A stretch of DNA of 64,000 nt. Source: Macrostomum lignano. Lineage: Eukaryota. Numbering within the stretch: position 1 is the first letter of the stretch; every line of letters starts with the position of its first letter. Below the pieces are notes generated by a model that worked only from the letters and a program-made list of their open reading frames with translations, was not told the DNA's origin and did not search any database. Of this stretch, positions 3,001 through 61,119 are shown one piece after another. The DNA is taken from positions 15,621 to 79,620 of the forward strand of contig NIVC01003738.1 in assembly GCA_002269645.1 (NCBI GenBank). Direction: 5' to 3'. Both the position numbers and the translations under genes were made by a program.

Positions 3001-4850
3001 TATTCTAACGCTGCTGCATCCCAATATTGGTCCGGCAAAGAGTGCAGGAATGAAAACCCCATCGCATCTGCGTCCTAGCCAGCCCCTGTAGGATAATGAG
3101 GAGAAATAGGGATCCTAAACTCGATGTCAACTTGAGCACCGGAATGGAAGCAAATGCTCAACTGTGGACCAAACTGACTCATTGAAAACAAGTTCGTAAA
3201 AATCAGGTTAAATCAAAATTAAAAGTCAACTCTTTCACTGTCCTCATTCACAGAGAGCTGAACTGACGCGGATGCAAAACAGCCACACCTGGAAGGAACA
3301 CGGCAGCATTACACCACCAGCATGTGCATCGCTGAATAACGAATCGACTTTTCTCATCAACTTCACTGCTCAGCAGGACTTCAATGGCTCGACGATTTTT
3401 CAAACAAGCGAACAGGTCTTTCGTAACTGCCCCCCAAAGGAAACAGGTAACTCATTTTTACCGACACATAACAGCCAATCGCAAATAAAATGTCGTTAAA
3501 ATAGTAAAACAGCAAAATATTATGTATTTACCTTTGTCAATTCAAAGCTCTAGACTTTCCAAAGCTGTAAAATTAAAGTACGATTTCCGACCGAAGAGTA
3601 ACCTAAATTTCGCTATAAACTGGTATTGAACACAAAATATTAGTAAACTGCAGCATTTAAAGAAATTGTCCCTGCATTCAACACAGCGTCTCAATAGCTG
3701 GATGCACTTCCAGAGGCCCTCCGTCAGGTCACGTTGTTCTTTATGTCTTCCAGGTCTTCAAATCGGGATCCCTAGAGAGCTATGGGGGACCTGCCAGAAA
3801 TCGCAGGGGGCATGTCTGGTGAATAAGGTGATGGCTCAGCTCAAGCTGATGCGTTGTCGTGATGCAGCGATTGGGCATTGTTGCTCCCGCCGCATCCTCG
3901 GCATGAGCCTCTTCTTAAAGTTCTGATTTACAGCTTGTCCCTGTGGCACAAACTCGTGATTGATGAGGCCCCGCGAATACATTTCTCGCTAGCGCTGGGA
4001 ACCTGGCTAAAGCTCTCTATTTTACTTTTGTTTCAGATGAAGATGGAAGTTTCACTCTATCGGTGTCTCCGGTGTGGATCCCGAGCAGGAAAGTTGAGTC
4101 AACGGGTACGAGGCTTGAGCCAGACTCACTTTGCTTAAATTTTAATTGAGAACATCAGAGGTCATAACAGGAAACTTACCAGCAGGTTCAATTAACTTTG
4201 CAGATCCATTCTCAACCGTGTACGCCTTTCCACTGTCGCACCTGCTCCTTGCATCCGGTTCGGTGATAGCCGTAATTGTGATGGTGGGCATCGCCTCATC
4301 TGTGATTACCTGGGTAATTACGAGCTAAAACCTTTTTTCTGGATAGCTTTTGTCAGTCAGTCAGTCAGTCAGTCAGTCAGTCAATCAGTCAGTCAGTCAG
4401 TCAGTCAGTCAGTCAGTCAGTCAGTCAGTCAGTCAGTCAGTCAGTCAGTCAGTCAGTCAGTCAGTCAGTCAGTCAGTCAGTCAGTCAGTCAGTCAGTCAG
4501 TCAGTCAGTCAGTCAGTCAGTCAGTCAGTCAGTCAGTCAGTCAGTCAGTCAGTAGTCAGCTGTTTACCTTGCAGAGAGTTTCCCGGTCCCGATTAGCCGC
4601 AGTGGCTGCTCAGCGCAGAGGCGGTGGCGCACTTCGGATGCAGCCGCTGGCAGCCGTGGCCTCCGCGGGCGCCGGCAGCAGCGCGTACGACTACCCGTCC
4701 ACGAATGCGACAGCTCAGGGTAGCAGGAGCCACAGCGAGGCCGGAGAGTCCAACAACATACCCAGTGTCTACCTGGTGCTGAGTCCGTCGAGGAGGTCTC
4801 AGCAGCAGCAGCAGCTGGTCAGCAGTTTTGAGCCGAGGCAGCAGAGCTAA
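1..4850 (+). CDS. Receptor family B copy B1 (3' part; 5' exons lie upstream of the window): Ig-like domains, TM, ITIM-bearing tail
   Basis: Hand-spliced exons with consistent phases: <1-45, 122-266 (GC donor), 358-512, 698-878, 1963-2129, 2215-2359, 2435-2553, 3254-3446, 3754-? (3' boundary unresolved; in-frame TGA near 3924 and a 23-nt length difference versus B3), 4037-4105, 4159-4313 (TM: [24 protein letters not shown]), 4575-4850 (RVSRSRL...AYDYPS...SVYLVL...stop). Exons are homologous to B2, B3 and B4. Confidence 0.75.
921..1946. repeat. 15-bp minisatellite (CACCCCTCACCCAGC)n in a B1 intron
   Basis: About 68 near-perfect units; source of the spurious SHPSP/GWVRG ORFs. Confidence 0.97.
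4159..4313 (+). CDS. B1 transmembrane exon
   Basis: Acceptor catcag|AG, hydrophobic run of about 24 aa, donor TGG|gtaatt (phase 0) joins in frame to the basic RVSRSR of the next exon. Confidence 0.75.
4352..4559. repeat. (GTCA)n microsatellite
   Basis: Direct inspection. Confidence 0.98.
4575..4850 (+). CDS. B1 cytoplasmic-tail exon with ITIM-consensus SVYLVL (4764-4781)
   Basis: Acceptor ttgcag|AGA; 91 aa then TAA; S-x-Y-x-x-L fits (S/I/V/L)xYxx(I/V/L); same exon at 47072-47348. Confidence 0.75.
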   Translation, partial: RVSRSRLAAVAAQRRGGGALRMQPLAAVASAGAGSSAYDYPSTNATAQGSRSHSEAGESNNIPSVYLVLSPSRRSQQQQQLVSSFEPRQQS

Positions 4851-4972
4851 GAAATGGCTGAAAGCAGAGAATAATTTGATTTTTTCTACGACCTACTTTG
4901 AAATCGTTTCCAACTAAAAAATTACAATCTAAAACCTTTACTTGGGTAACTTTATTGGTCGATGGGTTATCA

Positions 4973-10344: not shown

Positions 10345-10406
10345 TGGTGGCAGCGGTGGGATCCGAACCCACGCCCTTTCGGACTGGTGCCTCAAACCAG
10401 TGCCTT
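10345..10406 (-). other. Extended primer-binding site: 62-nt copy of the 3' part of tRNA-Leu including CCA
   Basis: Reverse complement reads AAGGC A CTGGT TTGAGGC ACCAG TCCGAAAGGGC GTGGG TTCGGAT CCCAC CGCTGCCA CCA: anticodon arm, variable arm, T arm, acceptor strand and CCA. The 5' end of the tRNA is absent. Confidence 0.9.
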
Positions 10407-17607: not shown

Positions 17608-18497
17608 GTTTCAAAGCACTGAGAGAAACCGTACATTGCTACTGTCATTTCGTACTCACGGCCTGTTTACTATCGGGACCAGCATCTGCAGGCAGATGCC
17701 TGAACTAAACCAATTGAATAAAAATGATCTTGATTGCGCCGTGTCAGCTGCTTTGGCTATTGCAAAATGCGAAAGTCACAGAGTATTAAATAAGCCAAAC
17801 TGATTGAAGTCAAATGTTCAAGAAAAAACATTCACATAAATATTTAAAATAGCCTTAAGTAAAAACAGTCCAATTTTCAGGGACATTAACTGTAGCAGCA
17901 GTTCAAGGCAATCGCCAGAGAGCGCCATTTGATGTAAACAAAGCAGGCAGTCATAAAATCTTCAAATCCAAGCTGCATCCATCGCACACAGCATAAAATT
18001 TCTGTCAGAAAAGCAACATCGGTGAAAGTTTTCTTTACCTGAATATTCGACTTTAAATGAAGGATTTTTACAAATTGCTGCAGTTGCTGCTGCTCTGCAA
18101 CACGAAATTTACCGCTGGCAGCCCAGACTGCTCCTCCACGAGTCAAGATGGTGAGGCAAGCGAATTTAGCTCGTAAAATGCATATCAACTCCAGCTTTAT
18201 AAAATGATTGAAAAAAAGCAATATCTACTCTATTTTCAGTGACAGTGCAGCTGAGCAGGGCTGACGTTCTGCGCACCTGGCAACCCAGCGGTGCGCACTG
18301 CCGTTGGTGGGAGAGTCGGCAGTCAGAGACAAACCGATTTCCTGCTGCTGTGCGGTCCGGGCCTCGGTGGCTTGTGATGCAGCTGAGGCAGCCGATGATG
18401 CTGGAGGCGGTGAGCGTACGAGACTGGGGTGAGTGACGCTGACCGACTCATTCTCATGATGCATGATGAGGCATAGGGAGTCTGGGACACACAGCGT

Positions 18498-18677
18498 GAG
18501 ACAGTGTGAGACCAGCTAGCATCTAATTAGCACTCTGAGACAGTGTGAGACCAGCTAGCATCTAATTAGCACTCTGAGACAGTGTGAGACCAGCTAGCAT
18601 CTAATTAGCACTCTGAGACAGTGTGAGACCAGCTAGCATCTAATTGGCACTCTGAGACAGTGTGAGACCAGCTAGCA
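18498..18677. repeat. 39-bp minisatellite (GAGACAGTGTGAGACCAGCTAGCATCTAATTAGCACTCT), about 5 units, B2 intron 2
   Basis: Direct inspection; no spacers. Confidence 0.95.
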
Positions 18678-20145
18678 GCCAAGCACTCGTGTTGCAGATG
18701 GCCAGTGGCTCGCAGCAGCTCCGGTCGGCTCGCCCGTGTCAGCGGTCGGAGCCTCGAGCCTCTCGCTGGAGCTGCAGCTGGAGGATCCGTGCCGCGCCAG
18801 CTGGGAGGCCTTCAACGGTAGCGACCGCTGGCGGAGTCTTGATGGCTCCAGCGGCACCGCCATGGTGAGTGAAAGAGGCAGCTGTTTGCATGCTGCACAT
18901 TTTGCACATTCTGAGGAACTCAGACATTCTGAGCACTCCTCCTTCCAGCTGCCAGTGGCCTTCCTTCTGTTCAGCAGCTCCCAGCAGCTCCAGTGGAGCG
19001 CTCTCAATCTGCTAGGTGAGGTCCTTCAACTCAGTGCTTTGATTGCAGGTCGCTGAGTTCATTTCACCTCCGCATCCTCAGGCCGCACGGCCCCAATGCA
19101 GCTGAAGGAGACCAGAAACCCATTTTGCCTGAACTGCGAGCCCCTCACGTGGAGACCCGGAGATCGCATTGGCTTCTCAGTGAGCAGCTGCGGCTCCCAG
19201 ACTCCGAGCTGCTCAGTTCGACCCGCGGATGGCAGCAGGCGAGAGGATGAGCTGGTGAGCGACTGGCCGGCCTTGACTGACAGATTTTCCTCTTTGAGGC
19301 TGAGAGCTCAGGGCATTCTGTGATTTTCAGCTCAAGATCTCAAGACCGGGCAGTGATCGGATTCGAGTCACCCATTTTGAGTACCTTGTGGAGGAGACGG
19401 AAGTTCCGCGGACTCTGACCTGCTGGCAGGGGAACCCAGCGGCTCTGCAGATTGAGAGGGAAATCGCTGTGATATGCAAGTCTAGAGATTTGCGGGTGCA
19501 GCTGTCATTCAGGGCTCTGTACAGTTTTACACCTATAAATCCATTTGTATGCACTTTTAATTGTAGTTGTGAAGGGAAGCTTCACTCTATCGGTCTCTCC
19601 GGTGTGGGTCTCGGGCAGGAAGATTTTCTTAGAAGCCGAAGCGCAGCGATTCTTTCCGGAGCCCAGGATTCGGTGTTCGATCAGGGCGGTAACGGAGCAG
19701 CCTTTGAAATTTGAGAGTCAGGTGAGGACAGGTGCACTGTCTTTGAGTGAGCGATACCGCTGACAGCACGAGTTGATCTAAAATCTGACCGCCACGCCAC
19801 AACCCCAAGTTCCCAGTCACCGCGCCACCGCGTCACCGCGGCCTATCCTTACACAAAGCACACGTAAAATGCAGGTTCTGCATTCTATGTCGTTTAACTT
19901 TCAGAACCGGTCTGTAGTGAAGGACAATAAAAGCAGGGTTCTGCTGTCAGTTCGCTCAAGGTTCAGCTTTCACGCATCGCTCTCAATGCACGGAGGCCAG
20001 ATTCTGTGCTGGGTTACTCTCACTGGGGATGAAGACTTGGTTGCTATGAAGTACATGTTAAATCACAGTCTAACTCAGATTAGCGGTGAGAAATGCGCGA
20101 ATTGAATTCAGACTTCCATATCTCAGTATTCTGTGTTACCTCTCC

Positions 20146-20286
20146 CATCACCCCTCACCCAGTCACCCCTCACCCAGCCACCCCTCACCCAGCCACCCCT
20201 CACCCAGTCACCCCTCACCCAGCCACCCCTCACCCAGCCACCACCCACCCAGCCACCACCCACCCAGCCGCCCCTCACACAGCCAC
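20146..20286. repeat. Short 15-bp CACCCCTCACCCAGC array in B2
   Basis: About 9 units, paralog of 921-1946. Confidence 0.93.
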
Positions 20287-21033
20287 TCGCTCGCACTGCA
20301 GAGCCGTGCCAGACGGCCGTAGACCTGGGCTCGAGTCCGTACTGGCAGGTGGACCAAACCCGCCAGATCGCAGTGACCTCCAGCGCCTGCAGCATCTGGA
20401 ATGTGAGCCACAGCTGCCGGCTGCTGCAGGCTGATGGCGCTTCACCCGTGCCGCTCCGCATAGTTGAAGTACGCTTGCACTGAGACTGGCCAAAGTGCTC
20501 AGAGAAGTGCAGAGCCTCACCTGTCCCAATCTGCACCCTCATTCGCATTGCAGCAGAGCAGCTTCAGCAGCGTTCACCAGCTGCAGGTGAGCGGGTCGAT
20601 GGCTCATCAGAACTGGTCCGTTCGCTGCAGCGTCAACCAGTCAGGTGTGGTGTATGATGAGGCTGAGAGTCTGGAGCAGCTGCGACCGCCGATTTTCTGT
20701 GAGTGCCGAACAGTGCATAAAGCGAGTCAGCTGTGAACGCTTTGCTTGAATGCGATTTCCAATTTCCCTGCAGATCCGGCAAGCATTCAGGTAGATGGCA
20801 GGATTGAGAGCTCGCGACTGCACCTGGCTGTGGCTGCCTCCGACGCTCGGCCTCCGTTGTCATCTGTTGTCTGCCAGATCGCAAATTTCACTGTGAGTGT
20901 TTGATGCGAGCCCGAAAGAGGGCCGAATAAGCGTGCATGACATTAGCGTGCAGATGCTTCTCTTTGCTATCATCTTTTCTTTTCAAAGTTAAAATGCTGT
21001 GATGAAAACGTAGTTTAAGTGTTTACGAGGCGT

Positions 21034-21461
21034 TGACTAGAGAACCCAGGTGATTGACTAGAGAACCCAAGTGATTGACTAGAGAACCCAGGTGATTGAC
21101 TAGAGAACCCAGGTGATTGACTAGAGAACCCAGGTGATTGACTAGAGAACCCAAGTGATTGACTAGAGAACCCAGGTGATTGACTAGAGAACCCAATTGA
21201 TTGACTAGAGAACCCAGGTGATTGACTAGAGAACCCAGGTGATTGACTAGAGAACCCAGGTGATTGACTAGAGAACCCAAGTGATTGACTAGAGAACCCA
21301 AGTGATTGACTAGAGAACCCAGGTGATTGACTAGAGAACCCAGGTGATTGACTAGAGAACCCAAGTGATTGACTAGAGAACCCAGGTGATTGACTAGAGA
21401 ACACAGGTGATTGACTAGGGATCCCAGGTGATTGACTAGAGAACCCAGGTGATGGACTAGC
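21034..21461. repeat. 21-bp minisatellite (ACTAGAGAACCCAGGTGATTG)n, about 20 units
   Basis: Direct inspection. Confidence 0.96.
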
Positions 21462-22180
21462 ACCCTTCTTACCCAGCCTTATTTAACCTAATATTTTAGA
21501 CTAGTCTGATTCTAGCAAGACTTGAACCGGCCAGGGAGAACTGCACTGACTTGACGGGAAAGCTGTAGCATAGGCCTGTGTCTTATTGTTCTAACTTAAA
21601 GCCGTAGTTTTCAGATGCGCACTTGCGCCAGACTCGTGTGTTTGAGATGTGCGCTTGCGTCGTGAGCGCCAATGTAATCTATTGGTGGGGCAATGAGTGC
21701 AGGATTGAAACCCCATCGCATCTGCTCCCCAGCCAGCCCCTGTAGGACAATGAGGAGAAATGTGAATATTGAACTCGATGTCAACTTGAGCACCGGAATG
21801 GAACCAACCGCTCAGCTGTGGACCAAGCTGACTCATTGAACTAAATTCAAAGTCAAATCTCAATAACTGTCCTCATTTCCAGAGTGTTGAGCTGACGCGG
21901 ATGCAAAACAGCCACACCTGGCAGGCAAATGGCAGCATTACACTACCAGCATGTGCATCGCTGAATAACGAATTGAATTTTCTCATCAACTGCACTGCTC
22001 AGCAGGACTTCAATGGCTCGACGATTTTTCAAACAAGCGAACAGGTCTTTCGTAACTGCCCCCCAAAGGAAACAGGTAACTCATTCTTCCTAACATCAAG
22101 TGATTTTTTCCCGACATTTTGTAACCACTGTTGCATGTTCAAAACTGTATACTTAGATGTAACTGCTCAGTTGCGGGAGA

Positions 22181-25100
22181 TATTGGGAGGTAGATTAGTA
22201 GCATTGATTTTCTTTCCAATTCCACTGCGTGATTTAATGTACGTACGTGTTTATTATTCAATTTTCTATGTACGCTGATTTAGCCCAGGCCCATCTCACC
22301 CACCCCCCTCCACGCTGGCTGATTCTGACTGACTGCAATATATATATCATCGAGAGGGCTTATTAGCCCTGTGTACGGTTTACGCTTTTCGTTTTGTTAG
22401 CGTCCCGCTTGAGCCTCAGCTCCAAAATAGTTTGGCGGACCATCGGTCTTTTCATTTCTACAGTACATTTTGGTAGCACTAAATTGGACAAGCCTAAATT
22501 ACCACTGACGTGGCAAGCAATAGAATCCTACTGTGAAACGAAGGACCAAGATGGACAGTGACGACGCCAATGAACAACAACAGGAAGCCCAAGACGATGC
22601 CGGCGCGCTGCGTTTAGAGAAGCTGCGCTTCGAGAAATCCCGAAAAAAAGCAGCGTTCACTCGTTGCAAAAACAAGCTGTCTTGGCTGCTAAAGACGCGC
22701 GCCTCTGATGACGAAGTGCAAGCTACCTGCGATGCTCTATCCGACCTGCAGGACCTGGTCAGCGCCATCCAGGAAGAACTGCATCAAGGCTACGCCGACG
22801 CCAAGGACAACGAGAGGCGACAGCGCCTACTAGAAGAGATGGAGGAGACTGAGCGCGACTACCAAGCTGCCATTCAGCGCGTCGAAAGTTCCAGAAACCG
22901 GGGATTGCAGCGCGCCCAAGAAGCCCCTCCTGCCGCGAGTTCAAGCGGTGAGAACGCTGCGGGTGACCAAGAAGAAGCAGCTGGTGAGTTAGACAAACTT
23001 TCTGGCAGTGCTGCGTCCAGCAAAGGATCCAACCCGAAGGAGCTTTCAAAGGATTTGTGGAAGATGCTGAAGCGTGTTGAAATCCCAACATTTAGTGGAG
23101 AAAAGCAGAAGTATGAAAACTGGAAGGCAGCCTTTGTTGCGTGCATCGACAGCGCCCCTGCAACACCAGAATTCAAGTTGCTGCAGCTTAGGCAGTACCT
23201 CGGCGGTGAAGCTTTGAAGGTTATAGAACATCTAGGACACTCCGCTGCTGCATATGAGGCTGCAAAAGAGAGACTAGAGAGAGAATTTGGTGGACAGCGT
23301 AGACAACTTGCTCTGCACTTGTAAGAGCTGGACAGCTTCCCGATCGTGCGAAATGGAAACGCCAAGGATCTGAAAAGCTTTGCTAATCTACTGGATGTGG
23401 CTGTCGTTAACCTTGAGGATGCGGGTAAAGAGGCAGAGCTTCAAGATGGGATGTTGTATGTGAGGTTGCAGAAAAAGTTGCCTGAGCAGATGGTTGCCAG
23501 CTACCGGAGGTGGATCTTTGAGCAGCGGAAGCCGGAGAGTGTTAGAAATCTGAGAATTTGGGTGCTGCAAGAAGCAGAGTTTCAGACTGAAGCGTCAGAG
23601 ATTGTGCAGGGCGTTGCCACCATGCAGCAGGAGCGTCAAAAGCGAGAGCAGCGACCAAAGACTTTCGTTACTACGGACAGTGACAAGAAGGTACAGCGAA
23701 AGATTTGCATTGTTTGTCAAGGTGATCACGAGCTGTGGTCCTGCAGTGAGTTCAAGGAGCTTCCGGTGGAAAAACGCTGGGACGCGGCGCAGAGCTCGAA
23801 GTGTTGTTTCCGGTGCTTGGGCCAAGGACATCTTGGCAGCCAATGTCGGCGCGGTCGTCGGTGCGGCATCAACAGCTGCATAAAGTTCCACCATCGCTTG
23901 CTTCATGCAGAAAAAGCGTTGGCCAAGTCTGGTGAAGCGAAGCAGACTGCATCCAAGGACGCTAAATCCGCTTCTAGTTCAGGAAAGACTGGACCGGTGA
24001 CGCTTCTGTCGGCTGGTGAAACGGCAATCTCGTTACGAACGGTGCCTGTAGTCTTACGGAACGGGTCCCGGAAGCTGAAGGTGAACGCCTTGCTCGACGA
24101 TGCCAGTACCAGGAGCTACATCAACATCGGGATAGCAGAAGCGCTTGGAGCGCATGGAGTGCTCGAAAAGGTGAAAGTCGGAGTCATCAATGGCCAAACA
24201 GAGACCTTCATGACAGCCCCAGTCTGCTTTAGCTTGGAAAGTCTGGATGGTCAGACCAGCTCAATGATCGTCGCCTTCACCGCTGATCACGTGACCGGGT
24301 CCCTCAAAGGCGTCGACTGGCACGAAGAAGCGCAGCAGTGGCCTCATCTGAGAAATGTGCCGTTTCCGAAGCTGTGTGAGCCTGCAGTAGTGGACTTGCT
24401 GATTGGTGCTGATCACCCGGATCTTCACGTGTCCTCAAGGAAATCGCCGGACAGCCGCTGGAGCCAAAGGCGCGCCTGACTCCCCTGGGTTGGACGTGCA
24501 TCGGTCGCACAGAGCAGGACAATTCTGAGATGCAGAACGCCCATTTTGCTGCCACTTTCTTCAGCTGCGATTCCGAATCTGGTCAGGTGGCTAAGATCCT
24601 GCGGCAGTTTTGGGAGATCGAGAACGTATCAGAAGGTGCCAATCGAAGTCCGCTGACCGCCGATGAGGAGAGAGCCGTCCAGCAAGCCAAGTCGTCGCTA
24701 AAGTACACGAAGGGCCGTTACCAGATCGGGATTCCATGGAAAAAGGATCGGCTGGCTCCAGCAGGCACTTTCTCAATGGCCTTGAAGCGACTAAAGAACA
24801 CCGAACAGCGGCTGATTAAGGATATGAACGTCTGCAAGCAGTATCAGGAGATCCTTGAAAAGTATGAACAGCAAGGTTATATCCGAAAAGTGTCGCAAGC
24901 TGAGACTGAAGGCCGCTGTTTCCTGCCGCACTTCTCAGTGCTGCGGCCAGACAAGGCTACAACAAAAGTGCGGATAGTCTTTGATGCATCGGCTGCCAGA
25001 TTGAACGACCAGATCCTCCAGGGCCCCAAACTGCAGAGGGATTTGGTTGACGTGCTGCTTCGGTTCCGCCGACACCCGATTGCGATCGCATGCGACGTAG

Positions 25101-27227: not shown

Positions 27228-27378
27228 TGAGGCATCGACAGAGCTGAGCAATATCAACAGCTTTGAGTGGTACGGTTTACTGAAACTGAGATGGAACCGC
27301 TCATCTGTGAACGTCTGCTGCTCCAGTTACCAAACCTGCACTGGATTGACCGTCTTTAAGTCTCTGCAGTGCAAATCT

Positions 27379-40844: not shown

Positions 40845-41181
40845 TGAGACTGTGTGAGACCAGCTAGCATCTAATTAGCACTCTGAGACAGTGTGAGACC
40901 AGCTAGCATCTAATTAGCACTCTGAGACAGTGTGAGACCAGCTAGCATCTAATTAGCACTCTGAGACAGTGTGAGACCAGCTAGCATCTAATTAGCACTC
41001 TGAGACAGTGTGAGACCAGCTAGCATCTAATTAGCACTCTGAGACAGTGTGAGACCAGCTAGCATCTAATTAGCACTCTGAGACAGTGTGAGACCAGCTA
41101 GCATCTAATTAGCACTCTGAGACAGTGTGAGACCAGCTTGCATCTAATTAGCACTCTGAGACAGTGTGAGACCAGCTAGCA
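40845..41181. repeat. 39-bp minisatellite, about 9 units
   Basis: Same unit as 18498. Confidence 0.95.
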
Positions 41182-42657
41182 GCCAAGCACTCGTGTTGCA
41201 GATGGCCAGTGGCTCGCAGCAGCTCCGGTCGGCTCGCCCGTGTCAGCGGTCGGAGCCTCAAACCTCCCGCTGGAGCTGCAGCTGGAGGATCCGTGCAGCG
41301 TCAGCTGGGAGGCCTTGAACGGTAGCGACCGCTGGCGGAGTCTTGATGACTCCAATGGCACCGCCATGGTGAGTTAAAGAGGCAGCTGTTTGCATGCTGC
41401 ACATTTTGCACATTCTGAAGAACTCAGTCATTCTGAGCACACCTCCTTCCAGCAGCCAGTGGCCTTCCTTCTGTTCAGCAGCTCCCAGCAGCTCCAGTGG
41501 AGCGCTCTCAATCTGCAAGGTGAGGTCTTTCAGCTCAGTGCTTTGATTTGCAGGTCGCTGAGTTCATTTCACCTCCGCACCCTCAGGCCGCACGGCCCCA
41601 ATGCAGCTGAAGGAGACCAGAAACCCAGTTTGCCTGAACTGCGAGCCCCTCACGTGGAGAAACGGAGATCTGATTGGCTTCTCAGTGAGCAGCTGCGGCT
41701 CCCAGACTCCGAGCTGCTCAGTTCGACTCGTGGATGGCAGCAGACGAGAGGCTGAGCTGGTGAGCGACTGGCCGGCCTTGCCTGACTGATTTTCCTCTTT
41801 GAGGCTGAGATCTCATGGCATTCTGCGATTTTCAGCTGTTCTCAAGACCTGGCAGTGATCGGATTCGAGTCACCCATTTTGAGTACCTTATGGAGGAGAC
41901 GGAAATTCCGCGGACTCTGACCTGCTGGCAGGGGGACCCAGCGGCTCTGCAGATTGAGAGGGAAATCGCTGTGGCATGCAAGTCTGGGGCAGCCAATCTG
42001 GGGTTTTGCGAGTTCCCACCCGCAGCTGGCATTCAGGGCCCCGTACAGTTTTGGCCCTGTTTAAACCTCTTTATGTACTTTTATTTGCAGCTTATGGTGG
42101 AAGCTTTACTCTGTCGGTCTCTCCGGTGTGGGTCTCCGGCAGGAAGGTTTTCTTAGAAACTGAAGCGCAGCGATTCTTTCCGGAGCCCAGGATTCAGTGT
42201 TCGATCAGGGCGGTGACGGAGCAGCCTTTGAAAGTGGAGAGCCAGGTGAGGACAGGTGCATTGTCTTTGAGTGAGCGATACCGCTGGCAGCACGAGTTGG
42301 TCTACAATCTGACCGCAACGCCACAACCCCAAGTTCCCAGTCACCGCGGCCTATCCTTACACAAAGCACACGTAAAATGCAGATACCCCTCATTCTGTGT
42401 CGTTTAACTTTCAGAACCGGTCTGTAGTGAAGGACAATAAAAGCCGGGTTCTGCTGTCAGTTCGCTCAAGGTTCAGCTTTCACGCATCGCTCTCAATGCA
42501 CGGAGGTCAAATTCTGTGCTGGGTGAATCTGACTGAGGATGAAAACTTGGTTGCTATGAAGTACAAGTTAATTCACATTGTAACGCAGATTAGCGGTGAG
42601 AAATGAGCGAATTAAATTCAGACTTCCGTATCTCAGTATTCTGTGTTACCTCTCCCA

Positions 42658-43466
42658 TCACCCCTCACCTAGCCACCCCTCACCTAGCCACCCCTCACTC
42701 AGCCACCCCTCACCCAGCCACCCTCATCCAGCCACCCCTCACAAAGCCACCCCTCACCCAGTTACCCCTCACCCAGCCACCCCTCACCCAGCCACCCCTC
42801 ACCCAGCAATCCCTCACCCAGCCACCCCTCACCCAGCCACCCCTCACCCAGCCACCCCTCACCCAGCCACCCCTCACCCAGCCATCACTTACACAGCCAC
42901 CCCTCACGCAGCCACCCCTCACCCAGCCACCCTCATCCATCCACCCCTTACACAGCCACCCCTCACCCAGGCACCCCTCACACAGCCACCCCCCACCCTG
43001 CCACCCCTCACCCAGCCACCCCTCACCCAGCCACCCCTCACCCAGACACCCCTCACCCAGCCACCCCTCACCCAGCCACCCCTCACCCAGGCACCCCTCA
43101 CCCAGCCATCACTTACACAGCCACCCCTCACGCAGCCACCCCTCACCCAGCCACCCTCATCCATCCACCCCTTACACAGCCACCCCTCACCCACGCACCC
43201 CTCACACAGCCACCCCTCACCCAGCCACCCCTCACCCAGCCACCCCTCACCCAGCCACCCCTCGCCCAGCAACCCCTTACACAGCCACCCCTCACCCAGC
43301 CACCCCTCACCCAGCCACCCCTCACCCAGCCACCCCTCACCCAGCCACCCCTCACCCAGCCACCCCTCACCCAGCCACCCCTCACCCAGCCACCGCTCAT
43401 CCAGCCACCCCTCACCCAGCCACCCCTCACCCAGCCACCCCTCACCCAGCCACCCCTCACCCAGCC
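42658..43466. repeat. 15-bp CACCCCTCACCCAGC array with degenerate higher-order blocks
   Basis: Direct inspection. Confidence 0.94.
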
Positions 43467-44213
43467 AATCGCACGCACTGCAGAGCCGTGCCAGACGGCC
43501 GTAGACCTGGGCTCGAGTCCGCACTGGCTGGTGGGCCAAACCCGCCACATCGCAGTGACCTCCAGCGCCTGCAGCATCTGAAATGTGAGCCACAGCTGCC
43601 GGCTGCTGCAGGCTGATGGCGCTTCACCCGTGCCGCTCCGCAGAGTTGAAGTACGCTTGCACTGAGACTGGCCAAAGTGCTCAGAGAAGTGCAGAGCCTC
43701 ACCTGTCCCAATCTGCACCCTCATTCGCATTGCAGCAGAGCAGCTTCAGCAGCGTTCACCAGCTGCAGGTGAGCAGGTCGATGGCTCACCAGAACTGGTC
43801 GGTTCGCTGTAGCGTCAACCAGTCAGGTGTGGTGTATGATGAGGCTGAGAGTCTGGAGCAGCTGCGACCGCCGATTTTCTGTGAGTGCCGGACAGTGCAT
43901 GAAGCGATTCTGTGAACCTTTGTTTGAATGCGATTTCCAATTTCACTGCAGACCCGGAAAGCATTCAGGTAGATGCCAGCATTGAGAGCTCGCTACTGCA
44001 CCTGGCTGTGGCTGCCTCTGACGCTCGGCCTCCAGTGTCATCTGTTGTCTGCCAGATCGCAAATTTCACTGTGAGTGCTTGATGCGAGCCCGAAAGAGGG
44101 CCGAATAAGCGCGCATGACAGTAGCGTGCAGATGCATCTCTTTGCTACCATCTTTAATATCTTTTCAATGTTAAAATGCTGTGATGAAAACGTTGCTTGA
44201 ATTTTTACGAGGT

Positions 44214-44621
44214 GCTGACTAGAGAACCCAGGTGATTGACTAGAGAACCCAGGTGATTGACTAGAGAACCCTGGTGATTGACTAGAGAACCCAGGTGATT
44301 GACTAGAGAACCCAGGTGATTGTCTAGAGAACCCAGGTGATTGACTAGAGAACCCAGGTGATTGACTAGAGAACCCAGGTGATTGACTAGAGAACCCAGG
44401 TGATTGTCTAGAGAACCCAGGTGATTGACTAGAGAACCCAGGTGATTGACTAGAGAACCCAGGTGATTGACTAGAGAATCCAGGTGATTGACTAGAGAAC
44501 CCAGGTGATTGACTAGAGAACCCAGGTGATTGTCTAGAGAACCCAGGTGATCGACTAGAGAACCCAGGTGATTGACTAGAGAACCCAGGTGATTGACTAG
44601 AGAACCCAGGTGATTGACTAG
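44214..44621. repeat. 21-bp minisatellite, about 19 units
   Basis: Same unit as 21034. Confidence 0.95.
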
Positions 44622-46086
44622 CGCCCTTCTTACCCAGCCTTATTTAACCTAATACTTTAGACTAGTCTGATTCTAGCAAGACTTGAACCGGCCAGGGAGA
44701 ATTGCATTGACTTGACGGGAAAGCTGTAGCATAGGCCTGTGTCTTATTATTCTAACTTAAAGCCGTAGCTTTCAGATGCGCACTTGCGCCAGACTCGTGT
44801 ATTTGAGATGTGCGCTTGCGTCGTGAGCGCCAATGTAATCTGTTGTCGGGGCAATGAGTGCAGGATTGAAGCCAGCCCCTGTAGGACAATGAGGAGAAAT
44901 GTGAATCTTGAGCTCGATGTCAACTTGAGCACCGGAATGGAACCAAGCGCTCAGCTGTGGACCAAGCTGACTCATTGGACTAAATTCAAAGTCAAATCTC
45001 AATAGCTGTCTTCATCCACAGAGTGTTGAGCTGACACCGATGCAACACAGCCACACCTGGCAGGCAAACGGCAGCATTACACCACCAGCGTGTGCATCGC
45101 TGAATAACGAATCGAATTTTCTCATCAACTGCACTGCTCAGCAGGACTTCAATGGCTCAACGATTTTTCAAACAAGCGAACAGGTCTTTCGAAACTGCCC
45201 CTCAAAGGAAACAGGTAACTCATTTTTCCCGACGCTTCATGTAATAACAGCCACTCGCAAATAAAATATCGATAAAATATTAAAACAGAAAAATATTGTG
45301 TATTCAATGTCAATTCAAATGTCAATTCAAAATGTCAATTCAAAGCTTTATACTTTCCAAAGCTTTTTTCAAAGCTTTTGGAATTTTTCAAACAAGCGAA
45401 CAGGTCTTTCGTAACTGCCCCCCAAAGGAAACAGGTAACTCATTTTTACCGACACATAACAGCCAATCGCAAATAAAATGTCGTTAAAATAGTAAAACAG
45501 CAAAATATTATGTATTTACCTTTGTCAATTCAAAGCTCTAGACTTTCCAAAGCTGTAAAATTAAAGTACGATTTCCGACCGAAGAGTAACCTAAATTTCG
45601 CTATAAACTGGTATTGAACACAAAATATTAGTAAACTGCAGCATTTAAAGAAATTGTCCCTGCATTCAACACAGCGTCTCAATAGCTGGATGCACTTCCA
45701 GAGGCCCTCCGTCAGGTCACGTTGTTCTTTATGTCTTCCGGGTCTTCAAATCGGGATCCTTTGAGAGCTATGGGGACCTGCCAGAAAACGCAGGGGGCAT
45801 GTCTGGTGAATAAGCTGATGGCTCAGCTCAAGCTGATGCGTTGTCGTGATGCAGCGATTGGGCATTGTTGCTCCCGCCGCATCCTCGGCATGAGCCTCTT
45901 CTTAAAGTGCTCTTCTTTCGTGATTGATGAGGCCTCGAGAATACAATTCTCGCTAGCGCTGGGAACCTGGCTAAAGCTCTTTGTTTTACTTTTATTTCAG
46001 ATGAAGATGGAAGTCTCACTCTATCGGTGTCTCCGGTGTGGGTCTCGGGCATGAAAGTTGAGTCAACGGGTACGGGTTTCTGCCAG

Positions 46087-46113
46087 ACTCACTTTGCTTA
46101 AATGTTAATCTAC

Positions 46114-46167
<54 letters not shown>

Positions 46168-46170
46168 ATC

Positions 46171-46204
<34 letters not shown>

Positions 46205-46256
46205 GGTTAGTTAGTTAGTTTGTTTGTTTGTTTGTTTGTTAGTTAGTTTGTTAGTC

Positions 46257-46301
<45 letters not shown>

Positions 46302-46487
46302 GTTTGTTTGTTTGTTTGTTTGTTTGTCAGTCAGTCAATCACCCACTCAAGTCAGTCAGTCAGTCACCCACTCAAGTCAGTCAGTCAGTCACCCACTCAA
46401 GTCAGTCTGTCAGTCACCCACTCAAGTCAGTCAGTCAGTCACCCACTCAAGTCAGTCAGTCAGTCACCCACTCAAGTCAGTCAGTCA

Positions 46488-46527
<40 letters not shown>

Positions 46528-46652
46528 CCCACTCACTCAAGTCAGTCAGTCAGTCAGTCACCCACTCAAGTCAGTCTGTCAGTCACCCACTCAAGTCAGT
46601 CAGTCAGTCACCCACTCAAGTCAGTCAGTCAGTCACCCACTCAAGTCAGTCA

Positions 46653-46692
<40 letters not shown>

Positions 46693-46733
46693 CCCACTCA
46701 CTCAAGTCAGTCAGTCAGTCAGTCAGTCAGTCA

Positions 46734-46773
<40 letters not shown>

Positions 46774-47057
46774 CCCACTCACTCAAGTCAGTCAGTCAGT
46801 CAGTCAGTCAGTCAGTCAGTCAGTCAGTCAGTCGTCAGTCAGTCAGTCACCCACTCACTCAAGTCAGTCAGTCAGTCAGTCAGTCAGTCACCCACTCACT
46901 CAAGTCAGTCAGTCAGTCAGTCAGTCAGTCACCCACTCACTCAAGTCAGTCAGTCAGTCAGTCAGTCAGTCAGTCAGTCAGTCAGTCAGTCAGTCAGTCA
47001 GTCAGTCAGTCAGTCAGTCAGTCAGTCAGTCAGTCAGTCAGTCAGTCAGTCAGTCAG
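46087..47057. repeat. Compound microsatellite: (CTAT)n, (TTAG)n, (TTTG)n, GTCA/ACCCACTCAA
   Basis: Direct inspection; occupies the position of the B1 TM exon. Confidence 0.95.
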
Positions 47058-47709
47058 CTGTTCACCTTGCAGAGAGTGTCCCGGTCCCTATTAGCCGCAG
47101 TGGCTGCTCAGCGTAGAGGCGGCGGCGCACTTCGGATGCAGCCGCTGGCAGCCGCGGCCTCCGCGGGCGCCGGCAGCAGCGCGTACGACTACCCGTCCAC
47201 GAATGCGACAGCTCAGGGTAGCAGGAGCCACAGCGAGGCCGGAGAGTCCAACAACATACCCAGTGTCTACCTGGTGCTGACTCCGTCGAGGAGGTCTCAG
47301 CAGCAGCAGCAGCTGGTCAGCAGCTTTGAGCCGAGGCAGCAGAGCTGAGAGATGGCTATCTTTTAAATCGTTTCCAACTCAAAAACTACAGTCTAAAAAA
47401 TCTCTACTTGTCAATTTTATAGTTCGACGGGTTATCAGAGGTTGTAGCCGGCGAACGGGGACAAAATTATTTTTATGAGTCTTTAGTGAAATCGAGTACT
47501 TTTCTGCTTCTTTAAAATGATTATTTATAAAAAGTAAATACAATAAAATAAATTATTGCAGAACATTGTCTTTCCTGACAAATAGAGAAGAAAATAAAAG
47601 TCGATCAAGAAAGGAGACAGATTCTATCGCAAAATCAAAGGTGCACAAACTCCAAATTCGGGACTGAAAGCTTATTTAATAATTTCAGCTGAAGGTGCGC
47701 GTTGAACAT

Positions 47710-53535: not shown

Positions 53536-54130
53536 GGGTTCTGATTGGCTGGCCTTATGCGCAGTTGGCGGGCTTCGCTGATGGGGTCGCCTAGTCCCGC
53601 CCTATTGTACGGGTTTTTCTTTATTATTTATTACTTTTTTTGCTTCCTGTTGGGTCTTGGTTCCATGGCGACGAATCATTCACGGTAGCTGACTTTGGAG
53701 GTCAGGTAAGCAGCCTATTCAGCTGTGTACAAACCGAGGCCAACTCTGCTTAACCTGCAGCGTTAGCGGCACTTCAGACTAATTTAATTTACACGTACAG
53801 AATATAAATAAATAAACTGATTACAGTAGAAAAGCATGAGGTGTTCTTAGCTTTAAATCTAAGTTCCTAGGTTACACACCGTTTGCAGCAAAATCTTGGG
53901 ATCCGCGAGCTGATGGCCAAAATGCTGCAAACTACAGATTTCTGCTGCCACTTCCCAGCATCTGCAGCCGCGACATGCTGAGCTACCGGAGCAGCTGCTT
54001 TGCTGTTGTCTCACTTCAGCAGAGCTTGACAGATGCGCTGTCCAGCATCAGGGGTGACGCTCAGCTAGCCAGCTTCACCAGTTGGTCCGAGATAGAGGAG
54101 TTCATTGCATCAAGTGAGTGGTTTTCACAT

Positions 54131-54535
<405 letters not shown>

Positions 54536-55869: not shown

Positions 55870-58800
55870 ATGAAGGATTTTTACAAATTGCTGCAGTTGT
55901 TGCTGCTATGCAACACGAGATTCACCGCCAGCAACCCAGACTGCTCCTCCACGAGTCAAGCCGGTGAGGCCAGCGAATTTAGCACGTAAAATGCATATCA
56001 ACTCCAGCTAACACAGAGATTGAAAGTAAGCACTATCTACTCTTTTCCAGTGACAGTGCAGCTGAGCAGGGCTGACGTTCTGCGCACCTGGCAACCCAGC
56101 GGTGCGCACTGCCGTTGGTGGGAGAGTCGGCAGTCAGAGACAAACCGATTCCCTGCTGCTGTGCGGCCCGGGCCTCGGTGGCTTGTGATGCAGCTGACGC
56201 AGCCGATGATGCTGGAGGCGGTAAGCGTGCGAGACTGGGGTGAGTGACGCTGACCGACTCATTCTCATGATGCATGATGAGGCAGAGGGAGCCTTGGACC
56301 CAAAGTGTGAGACAGTGTGATGCTAGCATCTAATTAGCACTCTGAGACAGTGTGAGACCAGCTAGTATCTAATTAGCACTCTGAGACAGTGTGAGACCAG
56401 CTAGCATCTAATTAGCACTCTGAGACAGTGTGAGACCAGCTAGCATCTAATTAGCACTCTGAGACAGTGTGAGACCAGCTAGCATCTAATTAGCACTCTG
56501 AGACGGTGTGAGACCAGCTAGCATCTAATCAGCACTCTGAGACAGTGTGAGATCAGCTAGCATCTAATTAGCACTCTGAGACAGTGTGAGACCAGCTAGC
56601 ATCTAATTAGCACTCTGAGACAGTGTGAGACCAGCTAGCATCTAATTAGCATCTAATTAGCACTCTGAGACAGTGTAAGACCAGCTAGCATCTAATTAGC
56701 ACTCTGAGACACTATGATACCAGCTAGCATCTAATTAGCACTCTGAGACAGTGTGAGACCAGCTAGCATCTAATTAGCACTCTGAGACAGTGTGAGACCA
56801 GCTAGCATCTAATTAGCACTCTGAGACAGTGTGAGACCAGCTAGCATCTAATTAGCACTCTGAGACAGTGTAAGACAAGCTAGCATCTAATTAGCACTCT
56901 GAGACAGTGTGAGACCAGCTAGTATCTAATTAGCACTCTGAGACAGTGTGAGACCAGCTAGCATCTAATTAGCACTCTGAGACAGTGTGAGACCAGCTAG
57001 CATGTAATTAGCACTCTGAGACAGTGTGAGACCAGCTAGCATCTAATTAGCACTCTGAGACAGTGTGAGACCAGCTAGCATCTAATTAGCACTCTGAGAC
57101 AGTGTGAGACCAGCTAGCATCTAATTAGCACTCTGAGACAGTGTGAGACCAGCTAGCATCTAATTAGCACTCTGAGACAGTGTGAGACCAGCTAGCAGCC
57201 AAGCACTCGTGTTGCAGATGGCCAGTGGCACGCAGCAGCTCCGGTCGGCTCGCCTGTGTCAGCGGTCGGAGCCTCGAGCCTCCCGCTGGAGCTGCAGCTG
57301 GAGGATCCGTGCCGCGCCAGCTGGGAGGCCTTCGGCAGCAGCGACCGCTGGAGGCAGATTGGGGTGAACGGAGTAGATCAAGTAAGCTGCTTCATTTGAA
57401 TTATCTTATCATAATAATGAAATTAATAAATCCATCCATTTCACACTTCAGCCCGTAGTTCGTTTCCTTGTGCTAAGTAGCTTGAGAACTGCTGGACTTA
57501 GCTGGAGGGCCGTCTCATTAACAGGTTCCAAAGAGACTTTTAAATTTTATGAAGTTATCACTGAATCATAGCTTATTGTGAATTAAGTGCTTTAGAAGCA
57601 GGTGCAATTTTTCTTGTAGGTCGCTTTCTACCGCTGAGCCTCACAGTAACTGACAACCGTTTTTGCCCTCTGAGAGACCTGTCCGCCTTGCACGATGGAG
57701 TTGAAGCCTGCTTCTCTGTTTCAAGATGTACCAGCGAATCAATTCAATGCTTCTTTAACCTAAGCAATGGCGCAACTCTGGAGCCGAGACTGGTCTGCTC
57801 AACTCTTCTTTATAGCGTGCTATCAATACTTCTTCTTGCACTGACTTGATACAAAATTCGCTTTTTCAGCTACGAAGCCAAAAGCAGCAAGCTGAATTCG
57901 AGTTCACAGCCAATTTCTCGCTGCACGGAGCACTGCTCACCTGTCTTCTGCCTGATCGGCCAGGGATTCGAATCGAGCAGACCATTGGAATCGTTGGTGA
58001 GAAAGAAGTGTCTGCCTGAGTTAAAAAATGTATTTTAAGTCCGCTTTGAAGATTACAAAGCGAAACATGCACTTTTCAGTCACACCAAGTGTTGAACTGT
58101 CGTTATCAACCGTGTGGGTGATTGGTCGCAGAGCCAAGGTGCACTTTTTCTCAAGCCCAGCTTATCCTCCTCAGCAGCACAGGTGCCAAATTATCTCTGG
58201 CAGCAGCACCTGGGAACTGAATGAGCATTTTAGTAAGGTAAGTAGTATTATATTATTGTTGAAAATGCTGTACCTTGCCCAATCATGTACTTTTCCATGA
58301 AATAAACTTCCAGACTAGACAGGCTTATATCAGGAACAGCATCAACATGTCGCTAACTGAAGTAAAGTCTGAATTTGTTGTCACAGTCACGTCAGACATG
58401 CTGAATGGCACCGTGAGATGCAGTAGCAGCTATAAAAGTACAAGTCAAGGAGAAGTCATGAAAGATATCGATATTTCAAGCATCAGCGGTAAGTGCTTGC
58501 ATTAGAGAATCTCCTATACGCCCGATTGGAAGAGCCATAAAATCTCCTCATTTCAGAGCCTTGCACAACTGCCATTCATGTAGACAACATCCAGTACTCG
58601 TATCAGGTTGTACAAGTGACGTCACTGAAGTGCAGCATTTGGAATGTTCAGCACAGCTGCTGGCTTGTCAAGCCCAAAGAAGATGTCCTGGAGCATCTAA
58701 TTAAGCTTGCTGTACGGTTCTTTGATTTTGTAATAATGCTTTTTATTCAGAAGTTACTGCAACAATATCTGATGTCTTCTATTGCAGCAAGACGGCTTCA

Positions 58801-61119
58801 GCAGCACTCACAGGTTGAATATTATGAAACAAGAGCAGAAAAGAGACTGGCTAGTGAGATGCAGCGTTAATCAGTCGGGAGTGACATACCCGGATGTGGA
58901 AATTGAGTTAGCAAGCGATGCTGACAGTGAGTCAAACGATGCATTCAATCACTGTTAATTGTTCCAATGCAAGTTCAAAGGTTTTTTACCACTTAAATCT
59001 ACACTACACGTTGCTACATTTGTACTCGTATTAATACGAGCGTAATGCAAGAGACCTGCGAGCACCCCGACGCTACGTCTTCGGCGACCTTGTCCGCAAT
59101 CAGCTGCCCGTTCCGCTCACTCCTGATCACATACGAGCGTACGAGCGCCTCAATACTGCACACAGGCACGCACTCATACGCACGCTCCCACAAGGTGTAC
59201 TGCGGCCCTGACTTTCTAAGCGTCAGGCATGTACCTCTCTGGGCCTTAAGGGCTGGTCCTCATGAGCACTGAGCACGTTTGCTCTACTCACCTCCAGAAT
59301 AAAAACAAATGAGCGTTTTTAATATTATAAACTGTACTCGTTCGTATTCTGTTGGCTGCCATTAAAGCGACTTTTGATAACAGTCAACCCACAGCCAGCG
59401 TGGAGTCGACCCAAATTAATTGGTCATTCCACATGTAAGCACTCGAGAGTGCTTACTTAAGCAACTATTCTTAATCGTTAAATTTTCAGGTAGTGTATCT
59501 TCATTTGCTTATTACCCCTCGTAACTTTGAGGTTGTAACTGTTGCGAGCCTAAGTGTTCGATGTGTAACTACTCTGCCACTTACTAACCCCACTTTCTTC
59601 AGCTTTCTACTATCAGTGTGGACTGAGTTGCATAATTTTGCCGATTTTATCTGCCCTCGGCCTCATCCTGAGCTGCATGATTATTCGAAGAATTCGCCGC
59701 GCTAAATCAGCAAAGCCAAACTCGACTTCAAGTAGAAGTTCGACATTTAGAGGACGACGTACCCTCCTCTCGAGTGCGGCCACCTCGCCGCAGGCACAGG
59801 TAGGGTTAGCCACAGATTTAGTTTGTACATTAGGGCACGCATGTAAGTGTCAAATACTGGTGTTTTGATGAAGAATAGCTTTAAACTTAAAAGAAAATTC
59901 TAGCTACCCGGGGTTGTTTTGGCTATTCGCTCAAGCACTTTTGCTATTGGCTTTTGCCTGAAACTGAAGCTATTTCTTAGATTAGCCTGGACACAGATTG
60001 CCTGGTAAATAGCGCTGCTTATCTGATCAGATTTCAGGTGTGCACAGAAGCACAGTTCTAATTAGAACTTCCCTCAGCCTGAACGGCAATATTACATAAG
60101 TCCATGTGACTAAAATTTAGCAGTGAATTTCGGTGCATCTAATACCAGCTTTTCTAGAGCTAGATCCACTTTTGTTTCTTTAAAAGTTTAATTCCCATTC
60201 TAAATAGCAATATAGTAGAGATATTCTGTTGAGTTTGTGAAATGAATTGCGATCGCTTTCAATCAAGCGTGCTATGGCCTGCACGAGTATTCTATGAAGC
60301 CGTAGCCCATTGGTCAATCATGGATGAATAAAACCTTTGGTCTAGTGCGGCGCTCTGATGTGCCAGCGGCCCAGGCTCGATTCCAAGTGCAGTCATTAAT
60401 TTGGGGCTAAATTGGAATCTCGGCTTGGCTCTGCTCGTGCAATTAACGCCCCTGATCAGGGCCAACCCCCAAGGCACAGTGAAGTGCACATGTCTAAGAT
60501 AAAGTTAGGGCCGCTGTAAACTCCTGTGTGAGTGAGTGCCTGTGCGTATGACTGCGTACGTATCGCGCGCTTGTGTGCCTGCTCAGGGGAGTCGGGGGAA
60601 TGGGCAGCAATGCCTCTCGCCGGTTGTGACAATGTCGCCTAAAGTGCATCATGGGTGCAAACAGCTCCTTGCCTGTAACAAAAAAATGGCCCTTATATTC
60701 CGTAGCCCAGAATCATGAGCAGGCTGAACTGCTAGATAGACAAGGAAGAAGCTGGCGTGATCAAAGCAATCTGTTAACTTTCTCACCTTTAAGGCCTATT
60801 AAAGTATCATGTTAAAATTCTTCAAAAGAAATGACTCTGAATAACAGAAATCAATCGTTTCCACCCCCAGCGAGCGGCACCACAGCTCACTCATCATCAG
60901 GTTGATTCCTCGGCGTCAGTGAGCACAGGTGGTCCACCACCTGCAGAAAGCAGCAGCCGCGGCAATGAAAACAAGTCAATTAGCAGTCAAGAGACCGACC
61001 CAGTGTACGAAGAAGTATCTTTGTGTGTCTACAGGCCGGTGCACCCGCTGCCACGGTACTCACGGCAGTTCTCAGAAAAAAATTGTCGACGCGCCCACGA
61101 CTCCAGTCGGTTTGATTGA
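55870..61119 (+). CDS. Family B copy B4: intact 630-aa type I membrane receptor (signal peptide, discoidin-like, 3 Ig-like, TM, Tyr-motif tail)
   Basis: Twelve GT-AG exons, all phases consistent and no stops: 55870-55963, 56051-56239, 57218-57381, 57452-57524, 57620-57792, 57870-57996, 58080-58237, 58314-58488, 58557-58711, 58788-58926, 59603-59799 (TM GLSCIILPILSALGLILSCMII then RRIRR), 60871-61119 (PVYEEVSLCVYRPV). Total 1893 nt. Confidence 0.82.
56322..57197. repeat. 39-bp minisatellite, about 22 units
   Basis: Same unit as 18498. Confidence 0.96.
60339..60645 (+). mobile_element. SINE family 2 in the last intron of B4
   Basis: Reverse complement of 6139-6480. Confidence 0.75.

Follow-up and report, generated by a model that had tools for sequence, protein, structure and literature searches.

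An array of immunoglobulin-like receptor genes with modular cytoplasmic tails in the flatworm Macrostomum lignano

Introduction

How do similar ectodomains come to be joined to different cytoplasmic tails, and would such an arrangement allow one ligand-binding surface to be connected to different outputs inside the cell? The question is raised by a stretch of 64,000 nucleotides from the flatworm Macrostomum lignano (C3738:15621-79620; "the window" throughout), which represents a segment of a tandem array of immunoglobulin (Ig)-like membrane receptor genes, the B genes. A preliminary description of the window had proposed that near-identical N-terminal domains are wired to three different signalling tails, and that this follows the logic of inhibitory/activating paired receptors. 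Gene models were established from self-alignment of the window, tblastx comparisons between diverged copies, the reading of splice sites and existing UniProt models, and the genome-wide scans covered the M. lignano assembly (764 Mb, 5269 contigs).

We conclude that a receptor family with modular tails is real and previously undescribed. The joint explanation to which our analysis led us, and whose chances of being correct we consider about even, comprises an array of lineage-specific receptors, a homogenised N-terminal cassette, a tail swap in the gene B2 and tails that would act as phosphotyrosine docking modules. The typical protein would consist of a signal peptide, an N-terminal module of ~105 residues, two to four Ig-like domains, a transmembrane (TM) helix and a tail of 80-120 residues.

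Results

Gene types of the array and the origin of B2

Three types of B genes were distinguished from the continuation of the array on contig C3274 and from the homeologous region of C1776. The alpha type combines a B1-like ectodomain with a tail that contains YDYP and SVYLVL, the beta type has a distinct ectodomain (~33% identical to alpha) with a TM segment and tail of the B2 kind, and the gamma type is B4-like; a fourth, P0010-like type is 37% identical overall. Each tail type is present in 7-9 genomic copies spread over five contigs, of which two are overlapping or duplicate versions of the window haplotype and another two represent diverged homeologues or alleles. The normal rule in the array is that every gene type has its own ectodomain and its own tail, and B2 is the exception. 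Its ectodomain is identical to that of B1, 13 kb away, at 521 of 583 residues in a gap-free alignment. For the TM segment and tail of B2, the match is a beta gene (C3274:96257-96872) with 94% identity in this module and only ~33% in the ectodomain. By these alignments B2 is the product of recombination between alpha and beta genes. B4 does not represent the same ectodomain with another tail but belongs to a separate gene type. The near-identity put forward in the preliminary description holds for the ~105 N-terminal residues that correspond to exon 2 and the beginning of exon 3 (93-94% among B1, B2 and B4) and for the whole ectodomain of B1 and B2 (89%; 88.5% past the N-terminal piece), but not for the remainder of B4, which is 35% identical to B2.

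The recombination junction could be located in the intron downstream of exon 12 (Table 1). Homology of the alpha type stops at ~22090, 15 bp after this exon, and homology to the beta-type intron starts from ~22161. The same chimera, collinear, 95-98% identical and with the same alpha-to-beta order, is found at C1776:355868-365075. A Pao/BEL-type retrotransposon with long terminal repeats (LTRs) resides ~20 bp from the junction in B2, and C1776 has no insertion at the homeologous position. The identity of the two LTRs and the empty site are indicative of a recent insertion, and the presence of the same junction without the retrotransposon on C1776 documents that the chimera is real and older than this insertion. 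The beta-type intron homology of B2 is also broken by an insertion of ~2.2 kb (27387-29640) with a large inverted repeat (27524-28108 vs. 29459-28891, 87% identical), which is probably another mobile element. In the proposed scenario, unequal exchange within the intron that follows exon 12 would have set the beta TM segment and tail behind an alpha ectodomain, thereby generating B2 next to the alpha gene B1.

A homogenised N-terminal cassette

The genome contains no fewer than 55 copies of exon 2, distributed over 13 or more contigs and with an amino-acid identity of 95-100%. The gene types share a cassette that runs from exon 2 through the non-repetitive parts of intron 2 into the first portion of exon 3 (Table 1). 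Its DNA, including the intron, is 95-100% identical in types whose proteins otherwise show ~35% identity, and 87-100% identical when the alpha, beta, gamma and fourth types are taken together. Between types, exon 2 shows 2-6 differences in 189 nucleotides, chiefly at third codon positions. Intron 2 contains a 39-bp minisatellite (4.6 to 22 copies), and the non-repetitive sequence on either side of it reaches the same similarity as exon 2. The borders of the cassette are sharp. The upstream border coincides with the acceptor of exon 2, and intron 1 is unalignable between types; the downstream border lies inside exon 3, where the sequences diverge abruptly after EDPCRASWEAF. Because the intron is conserved as much as the exons, the pattern argues for concerted evolution by gene conversion and not for selection at the protein level alone, which possibly reinforces the conversion of the cassette. 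In our explanation, gene conversion would be the process that maintains the near-identity of this cassette throughout the family.

Gene models of the B genes

B1, B2 and B4 encode predicted type I membrane proteins, and every intron of the three genes is of the GT-AG type (Table 1). The exon 6/7 junction of B2 uses a weak donor (ACA/GTTTTA) that is also present in the UniProt model P0003 and keeps the frame. At the TM-to-tail boundary, all three genes have phase 0 on both sides, and the join of B1 is the same in P0003. The model P0036 agrees with exons 2-6 and the tail exon of B4 and omits the TM exon. The arrangement of similar ectodomains on three tails comprises the intact genes B1, B2 and B4; it does not include B3, which the preliminary description had listed as well. 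This gene is a pseudogene because a 22-nt insertion in exon 6 (~41990-42012) shifts the frame, exon 9 contains a TGG to TGA change (43579-43581) and the TM exon is missing, with microsatellites in its place (46108-47057). Downstream of exon 12 and ahead of the TM exon, B1 retains a short relic (4037-4107) that duplicates the beginning of exon 7, and B3 has one at 46001-46070; with borders that look splice-like and are both in phase 1, the relic could serve as an optional exon.

Identity and predicted fold of the family

A Pfam search with the exon translations and eight full-length paralogues retrieved no family and no Ig profile at threshold (best C2-set_2, E = 0.024); the UniProt name "Ig-like domain-containing" is an automatic annotation. 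All 19 matches of a word-index protein search belong to the free-living M. lignano, and HMMER, run against 1.84 billion representative proteins, gave 24 matches, of which all inspected ones are members of the Macrostomum family. With matches in Macrostomum only, neither search revealed homology to the Alr proteins of Hydractinia or the FcoR proteins of Botryllus. The searches show a family that is lineage-specific and apparently confined to Macrostomum, and full-text literature searches for this genus returned no paper on it. Paralogues that are just 35% identical retain the architecture and the cysteine pattern, and full-length NCBI models exist for the paralogues P0007, P0010 and P0012.

In the AlphaFold2 model of the full-length paralogue P0007, residues 200-600 fold into all-beta domains with a predicted local distance difference test (pLDDT) score of 60-90; the model also has a signal helix, one TM helix and a disordered tail. 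Foldseek comparisons of the beta region retrieved SYG-2, BCR, CEA, KIT, ICAM, SIRP-alpha, LILRB and CD22 (E = 1e-10 to 1e-6, top 4e-10), and nectins and contactin are also among the closest folds. The modelled ectodomain shows tandem Ig-like beta-sandwich domains. For the N-terminal module, two AlphaFold2 runs (P0007 with 13 alignment rows, P0025 with 16) gave a pLDDT below 50 from a shallow and nearly invariant alignment. By eye, a PRWLVMQL motif might be discoidin-like.

Composition of the tails

The motifs and coordinates of the tails were confirmed as previously reported. B1 carries AYDYPS and SVYLVL, and the same motifs are present in the tail of B3, which is 97% identical. The tail of B2 has 97 amino acids (...GSSEYDYPTT...EGAYTQVLLVPL...GRVYVNQTENAT, followed by the stop codon) with the motifs EYDYPT, AYTQVL (in GAYTQVL) and VYVNQ (in RVYVNQ), and the tail of B4 (...DPVYEEVSLCVYRPVHPLPRY... 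up to the stop codon) harbors VYEEV and VYRPV in tandem. The tails of B1 and B2 are distant homologues (35% over 49 amino acids, E = 2e-5), centred on GSSxYDYPxT, and the comparison established that the B4 tail is related to neither of them. The TM helices differ as well, with 23 residues in B1, FFSLLLASILASLVVGFLLSII in B2 and GLSCIILPILSALGLILSCMII in B4; hydropathy and motif scans retrieved all three segments, and B1 and B2 have LLLAS in common.

Further tail classes are found on other contigs (P0010, P0012, P0021, P0030, P0008, P0023 and P0027), and each of them is conserved across divergent paralogues. Two additional classes are characterized by YEDPD[VE]YxxI, which resembles a hemITAM (hemi form of the immunoreceptor tyrosine-based activation motif), and by an acidic, serine-rich stretch that is followed by GHYDLDGxTFVxY. 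The hemITAM-like motif is confined to paralogues outside the window.

Tails as candidate phosphotyrosine docking modules

SH2 domains differ in their specificity: pY-D-x-P is recognized by Crk, Nck and Abl, pYxN by Grb2, pYEEI/V by the Src family and [ILVS]xpYxx[ILV] by SHP-1 and SHP-2. The tails may accordingly be phosphotyrosine docking modules that are read by SH2 proteins. The alpha tail would provide YDYP (Crk/Nck/Abl-type pY-D-x-P) and, with SVYLVL, an ITIM (immunoreceptor tyrosine-based inhibitory motif) for SHP-2. The beta tail would retain YDYP, have lost the ITIM residue at position -2 (GAYTQV) and end in YVNQ (Grb2-type pYxN), and the gamma tail would offer YEEV (Src-family type) and YRPV. 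If the tails dock SH2 proteins, one ligand-binding surface could be linked to different intracellular outputs, which is paired-receptor-like without a classical adaptor-based activating partner. Candidate readers are encoded in the genome, with ~150 SH2 matches in total. One example is an orthologue of SHP-2/corkscrew (C522:344.6-349 kb; L048, C522:340000-349999) with N-SH2, C-SH2 and a protein tyrosine phosphatase domain that contains HCSAGIGRTG (E = 3e-62 to PTPN11); another is a Syk/ZAP-70-like tandem SH2 arrangement (E = 1e-40) at two loci on C2977 (L046) and C529 (L047). Signalling by the tails is a plausible inference.

The ITIM is present in all eight alpha-type genomic tails. The ratio of nonsynonymous to synonymous change (pN/pS) amounts to ~0.18 in the alpha tail (p = 4e-4) and 0.35 in the beta tail (p = 0.011), which is indicative of purifying selection. 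Y[DE]xP recurs in five dissimilar tail classes, namely alpha and beta (YDYPS/T), P0007 (YDVPT), and P0010 and P0021 (YEDP), and a C-terminal Y[VI]N in three classes (carriers beta, P0007, P0010 and P0012). Shuffled tails rarely contain Y[DE]xP (0.6-2%), YEE[IVL] (0.1%) or a YxxV-x4-YxxV pair (0.4%).

These data also bear on the alternative that the array is decaying and recently amplified, with little or no function, and that the conservation of the tails reflects the young age of the copies. Both B3 and B5 have degenerated to pseudogenes, a TAG interrupts an alpha copy at another site, a beta copy contains a frameshift, similarity in the non-coding flanks often equals that of the tail exons, and transposon insertions are numerous. 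However, the reading frames of B1, B2 and B4 are intact over 548-748 amino acids and 10-14 exons, pN/pS is significantly below 1 in the alpha and beta tails, the architecture and cysteine pattern are conserved in paralogues of 35% identity, and full-length models exist for P0007, P0010 and P0012. We regard this alternative as very improbable.

Several observations weigh against the joint explanation. Existing gene models back the TM-to-tail join for alpha genes only (P0003, P0005). The beta and gamma models P0011, P0024, P0036 and P0037 skip the TM exon and fuse the tail exon straight to ectodomain exons, and searches for annotated proteins with a B2- or B4-type TM segment plus tail gave only such models. 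They use GTGAGA donors inside the VRC codons that are conserved in the family (58416-58422 and 58851-58857 in B4), and we read them as likely prediction errors rather than secreted isoforms. The pN/pS of the gamma tail is 0.70 and not significant. A conservation of the tyrosine motifs above the tail background was found weakly for alpha (B1; p = 0.016), and within types there is no extra conservation for beta (p = 0.26-0.73) or gamma (p = 0.28). Shuffled tails match the ITIM in 12.5% and YxN in 32% of the trials, so that these two calls are weak when taken alone. The tails in the window contain neither an ITAM (YxxL/I-x6-12-YxxL/I) nor a hemITAM ([DE][DE][DE]xYxxL); the YEEV-x4-YRPV of B4 is not an ITAM because its spacing is too short and V replaces L/I. 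The TM cores of B1, B2 and B4 are devoid of K, R, D and E, and with no ITAM and no charged TM residue there is no recognisable "activating" partner. All YxxL/V/I sites match the endocytic sorting signal YxxΦ just as well. Finally, AlphaFold2 gave no usable fold for the N-terminal module, so that its role in ligand binding is assumed.

The match to YxxΦ suggests another reading, in which the proteins would serve in adhesion or recognition, their tyrosine motifs would be endocytic or sorting signals that bind AP-2, and the different tails would set trafficking or turnover. YLVL, YTQV, YEEV and YRPV all fit this signal, and the closest folds include the adhesion molecules SYG-2, nectins, ICAM and contactin. 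The most widely kept motifs, Y[DE]xP and Y[VI]N, are however SH2 consensus sites that do not conform to YxxΦ, and the former is rare by chance. We consider a pure sorting function unlikely and give preference to the docking of SH2 proteins.

The paired-receptor logic of the preliminary description corresponds to a stronger proposal, namely that the ITIM-bearing alpha genes such as B1 inhibit via SHP-2 and that B2, and perhaps B4, activate on the same ligand. It is in agreement with the 89% identity of the B1 and B2 ectodomains in front of different tails, the ITIM in 8/8 alpha copies, the encoded SHP-2 and Syk orthologues and the hemITAM-like tails of other family members. The conversion that keeps the N-terminal cassette identical is comparable to Siglec-11/16 and the CEA family (PMC5701461, PMC2832619). 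In contrast, B2 and B4 have long tails, no ITAM or hemITAM and no charged TM residue, and the functional side of the proposal is read from the sequence. Moreover, GAYTQV departs from an ITIM solely at position -2, and the site of B2 could therefore still be inhibitory or resemble an immunoreceptor tyrosine-based switch motif (ITSM). True inhibitory/activating pairs thus appear doubtful, and the data lend partial support to paired receptors as an analogy rather than as an established mechanism.

Neighbouring genes and repetitive elements

The B genes are interleaved with a second family, the A genes (Table 1), and because both alternate, the array repeats in units of one A and one B gene. The products of the A genes carry a TM segment of their own and are nearly devoid of a tail. 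A TAG is located immediately before the TM segment of A2 (16304-16306), A4 contains a frameshift inside the TM segment, and the UniProt model P0015 represents an A gene fused to a B gene. The A genes look C-type-lectin-like by eye, and a Pfam scan of them gave no match.

Microsatellites and minisatellites are abundant in the window. The copy number of a 15-bp repeat, (CACCCCTCACCCAGC)n, varies strongly between paralogues. Its interpretation as a mucin-like coding stalk, with three open, Pro/Thr/Ser-rich frames (PSHPS/ATPHP/LTQPP), was rejected; the repeat constitutes the pyrimidine tract of intron 8, since the frame conserved in B4 begins at the acceptor just past it. Mobile elements outside the B2 intron comprise a gypsy-type remnant and a piggyBac-like transposase gene.

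Table 1. Location of B genes, the junctions and cassettes of these genes, and neighbouring elements in the window
Feature	Position	Strand	Remarks
B1 (alpha), 3' part	1..4850	+	gene start 1277 bp upstream of window; 14 exons, intact 740-aa open reading frame (ORF), all introns GT-AG
B1 exons in window	..45, 122-314, 358-512, 698-878, 1963-2129, 2215-2359, 2435-2553, 3254-3446, TM 4204-4313, tail 4575-4850	+	
B1 predicted TM-to-tail junction	4313/4575	+	..ATTACCTGG / AGAGTTTCC..
B2, chimera of alpha ectodomain and beta TM/tail	18057..30539	+	14 exons, intact 748-aa ORF
B2 exons 1-8	18057-18150, 18240-18428, 18698-18864, 18949-19015, 19082-19254, 19331-19523, 19567-19721, 19905-20085	+	
B2 exons 9-14	20302-20468, 20554-20698, 20774-20892, 21883-22075, TM 29922-30061, tail 30276-30539	+	
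B2 predicted TM-to-tail junction	30061/30276	+	..GAAATCCG / CCACAGAGAGG..
Recombination junction in B2	22090..22161	+	15-85 bp past exon 12
Pao/BEL-type LTR retrotransposon in B2 intron	22183..27228	+	286-bp LTRs 22183-22468 and 26943-27228, 100% identical
Homogenised cassette, B2	18239..18825	+	exon 2, intron 2 (39-bp minisatellite), first ~125 nt of exon 3
Equivalent cassettes	B3 40587-41330; B4 56050-57345		also loci L036-L045
B3 (alpha), pseudogene	40425..47348	+	tail exon 47073-47348 still open
B4 (gamma)	55870..61119	+	10 exons, intact 548-aa ORF, all introns GT-AG
B4 exons	55870-55963, 56051-56239, 57218-57381, 57870-57996, 58080-58237, 58314-58488, 58557-58711, 58788-58926, TM 59603-59799, tail 60871-61119	+	
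B4 predicted TM-to-tail junction	59799/60871	+	..GCACAG / CGAGCGGCA..
B5 fragment	63286..63689	+	truncated exon 2 (28 codons) and exon 3 of a further copy
A genes	14278-16400, 36816-38320, 52855-55156	+	
15-bp repeat	922-1947, 20149-20286, 42659-43467		68, 9 and 54 copies
Gypsy-type LTR remnant	10150-13661		partial reverse transcriptase, RNase H, integrase; identical 194-bp LTRs; within (AGACACTA)n-type satellite
piggyBac-like transposase ORF	33307-34974	-	intact, 555 aa, DDE_Tnp_1_7 E = 1e-67

Discussion

Clustered families of Ig-like receptors with ITIM/ITAM-type tails arose independently in vertebrates, tunicates and cnidarians. The B genes resemble the paired receptors of mammals in that linked genes have a near-identical N-terminus or ectodomain, different TM segments and tails, and an ITIM in one member. 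Gene conversion keeps the ectodomains of such pairs alike in Siglec-5/14, Siglec-11/16 and CEACAM (PMC4042635, PMC5701461, PMC2832619). There is, however, no sequence homology to the mammalian receptors, the non-ITIM member has neither a charged TM residue nor an ITAM, the cassette occurs in at least 55 copies of several types instead of one pair, and the N-terminal module is not recognisable as a V-set Ig domain.

The Alr proteins of Hydractinia share with the B genes a lineage-restricted, clustered set of single-pass proteins whose tandem Ig-like domains are barely detectable by Pfam, tails too diverse to be aligned, some of them with ITIM or ITAM, and Syk and SHP homologues in the genome (PMC9546547). 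Both families differ in that they are not homologous and in that the N-terminal domains of Alr are variable, whereas the N-terminal cassette of Macrostomum is constant. A further difference is that we know of no allorecognition phenotype in the solitary flatworm M. lignano.

The Fester/FcoR genes of Botryllus are likewise Ig-like receptors in polymorphic tandem arrays that are diversified by intergenic recombination; their tails contain ITIM, hemITAM and paired VYxxV "core" motifs, with ITIM and hemITAM being swappable (PMC12582321). The alternation of tail-less A genes and B genes in Macrostomum recalls the neighbouring gene pairs of Botryllus, with an A-B pairing that is positional only. Homology is again absent, and the swap is brought about by alleles and alternative splicing in Botryllus but results from recombination between paralogues in Macrostomum.

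No such family has previously been described in flatworms. It may be, even if we hold this to be rather unlikely, that the Platyhelminthes independently evolved a paired-receptor-like system for the recognition of self and non-self, pathogens or mating partners, with a cassette kept by gene conversion, variable Ig-like stalks and recombination-shuffled tails of the ITIM, Grb2, Src and hemITAM-like types. The locus displays the mechanics clearly, with a mapped junction of a TM/tail swap behind an unchanged ectodomain and a sharply bounded cassette that is homogenised over at least 55 copies. As RNA interference, in situ hybridisation and transgenesis are workable in the regenerating M. lignano, the role of tail identity in the sign of signalling is directly addressable in an invertebrate.

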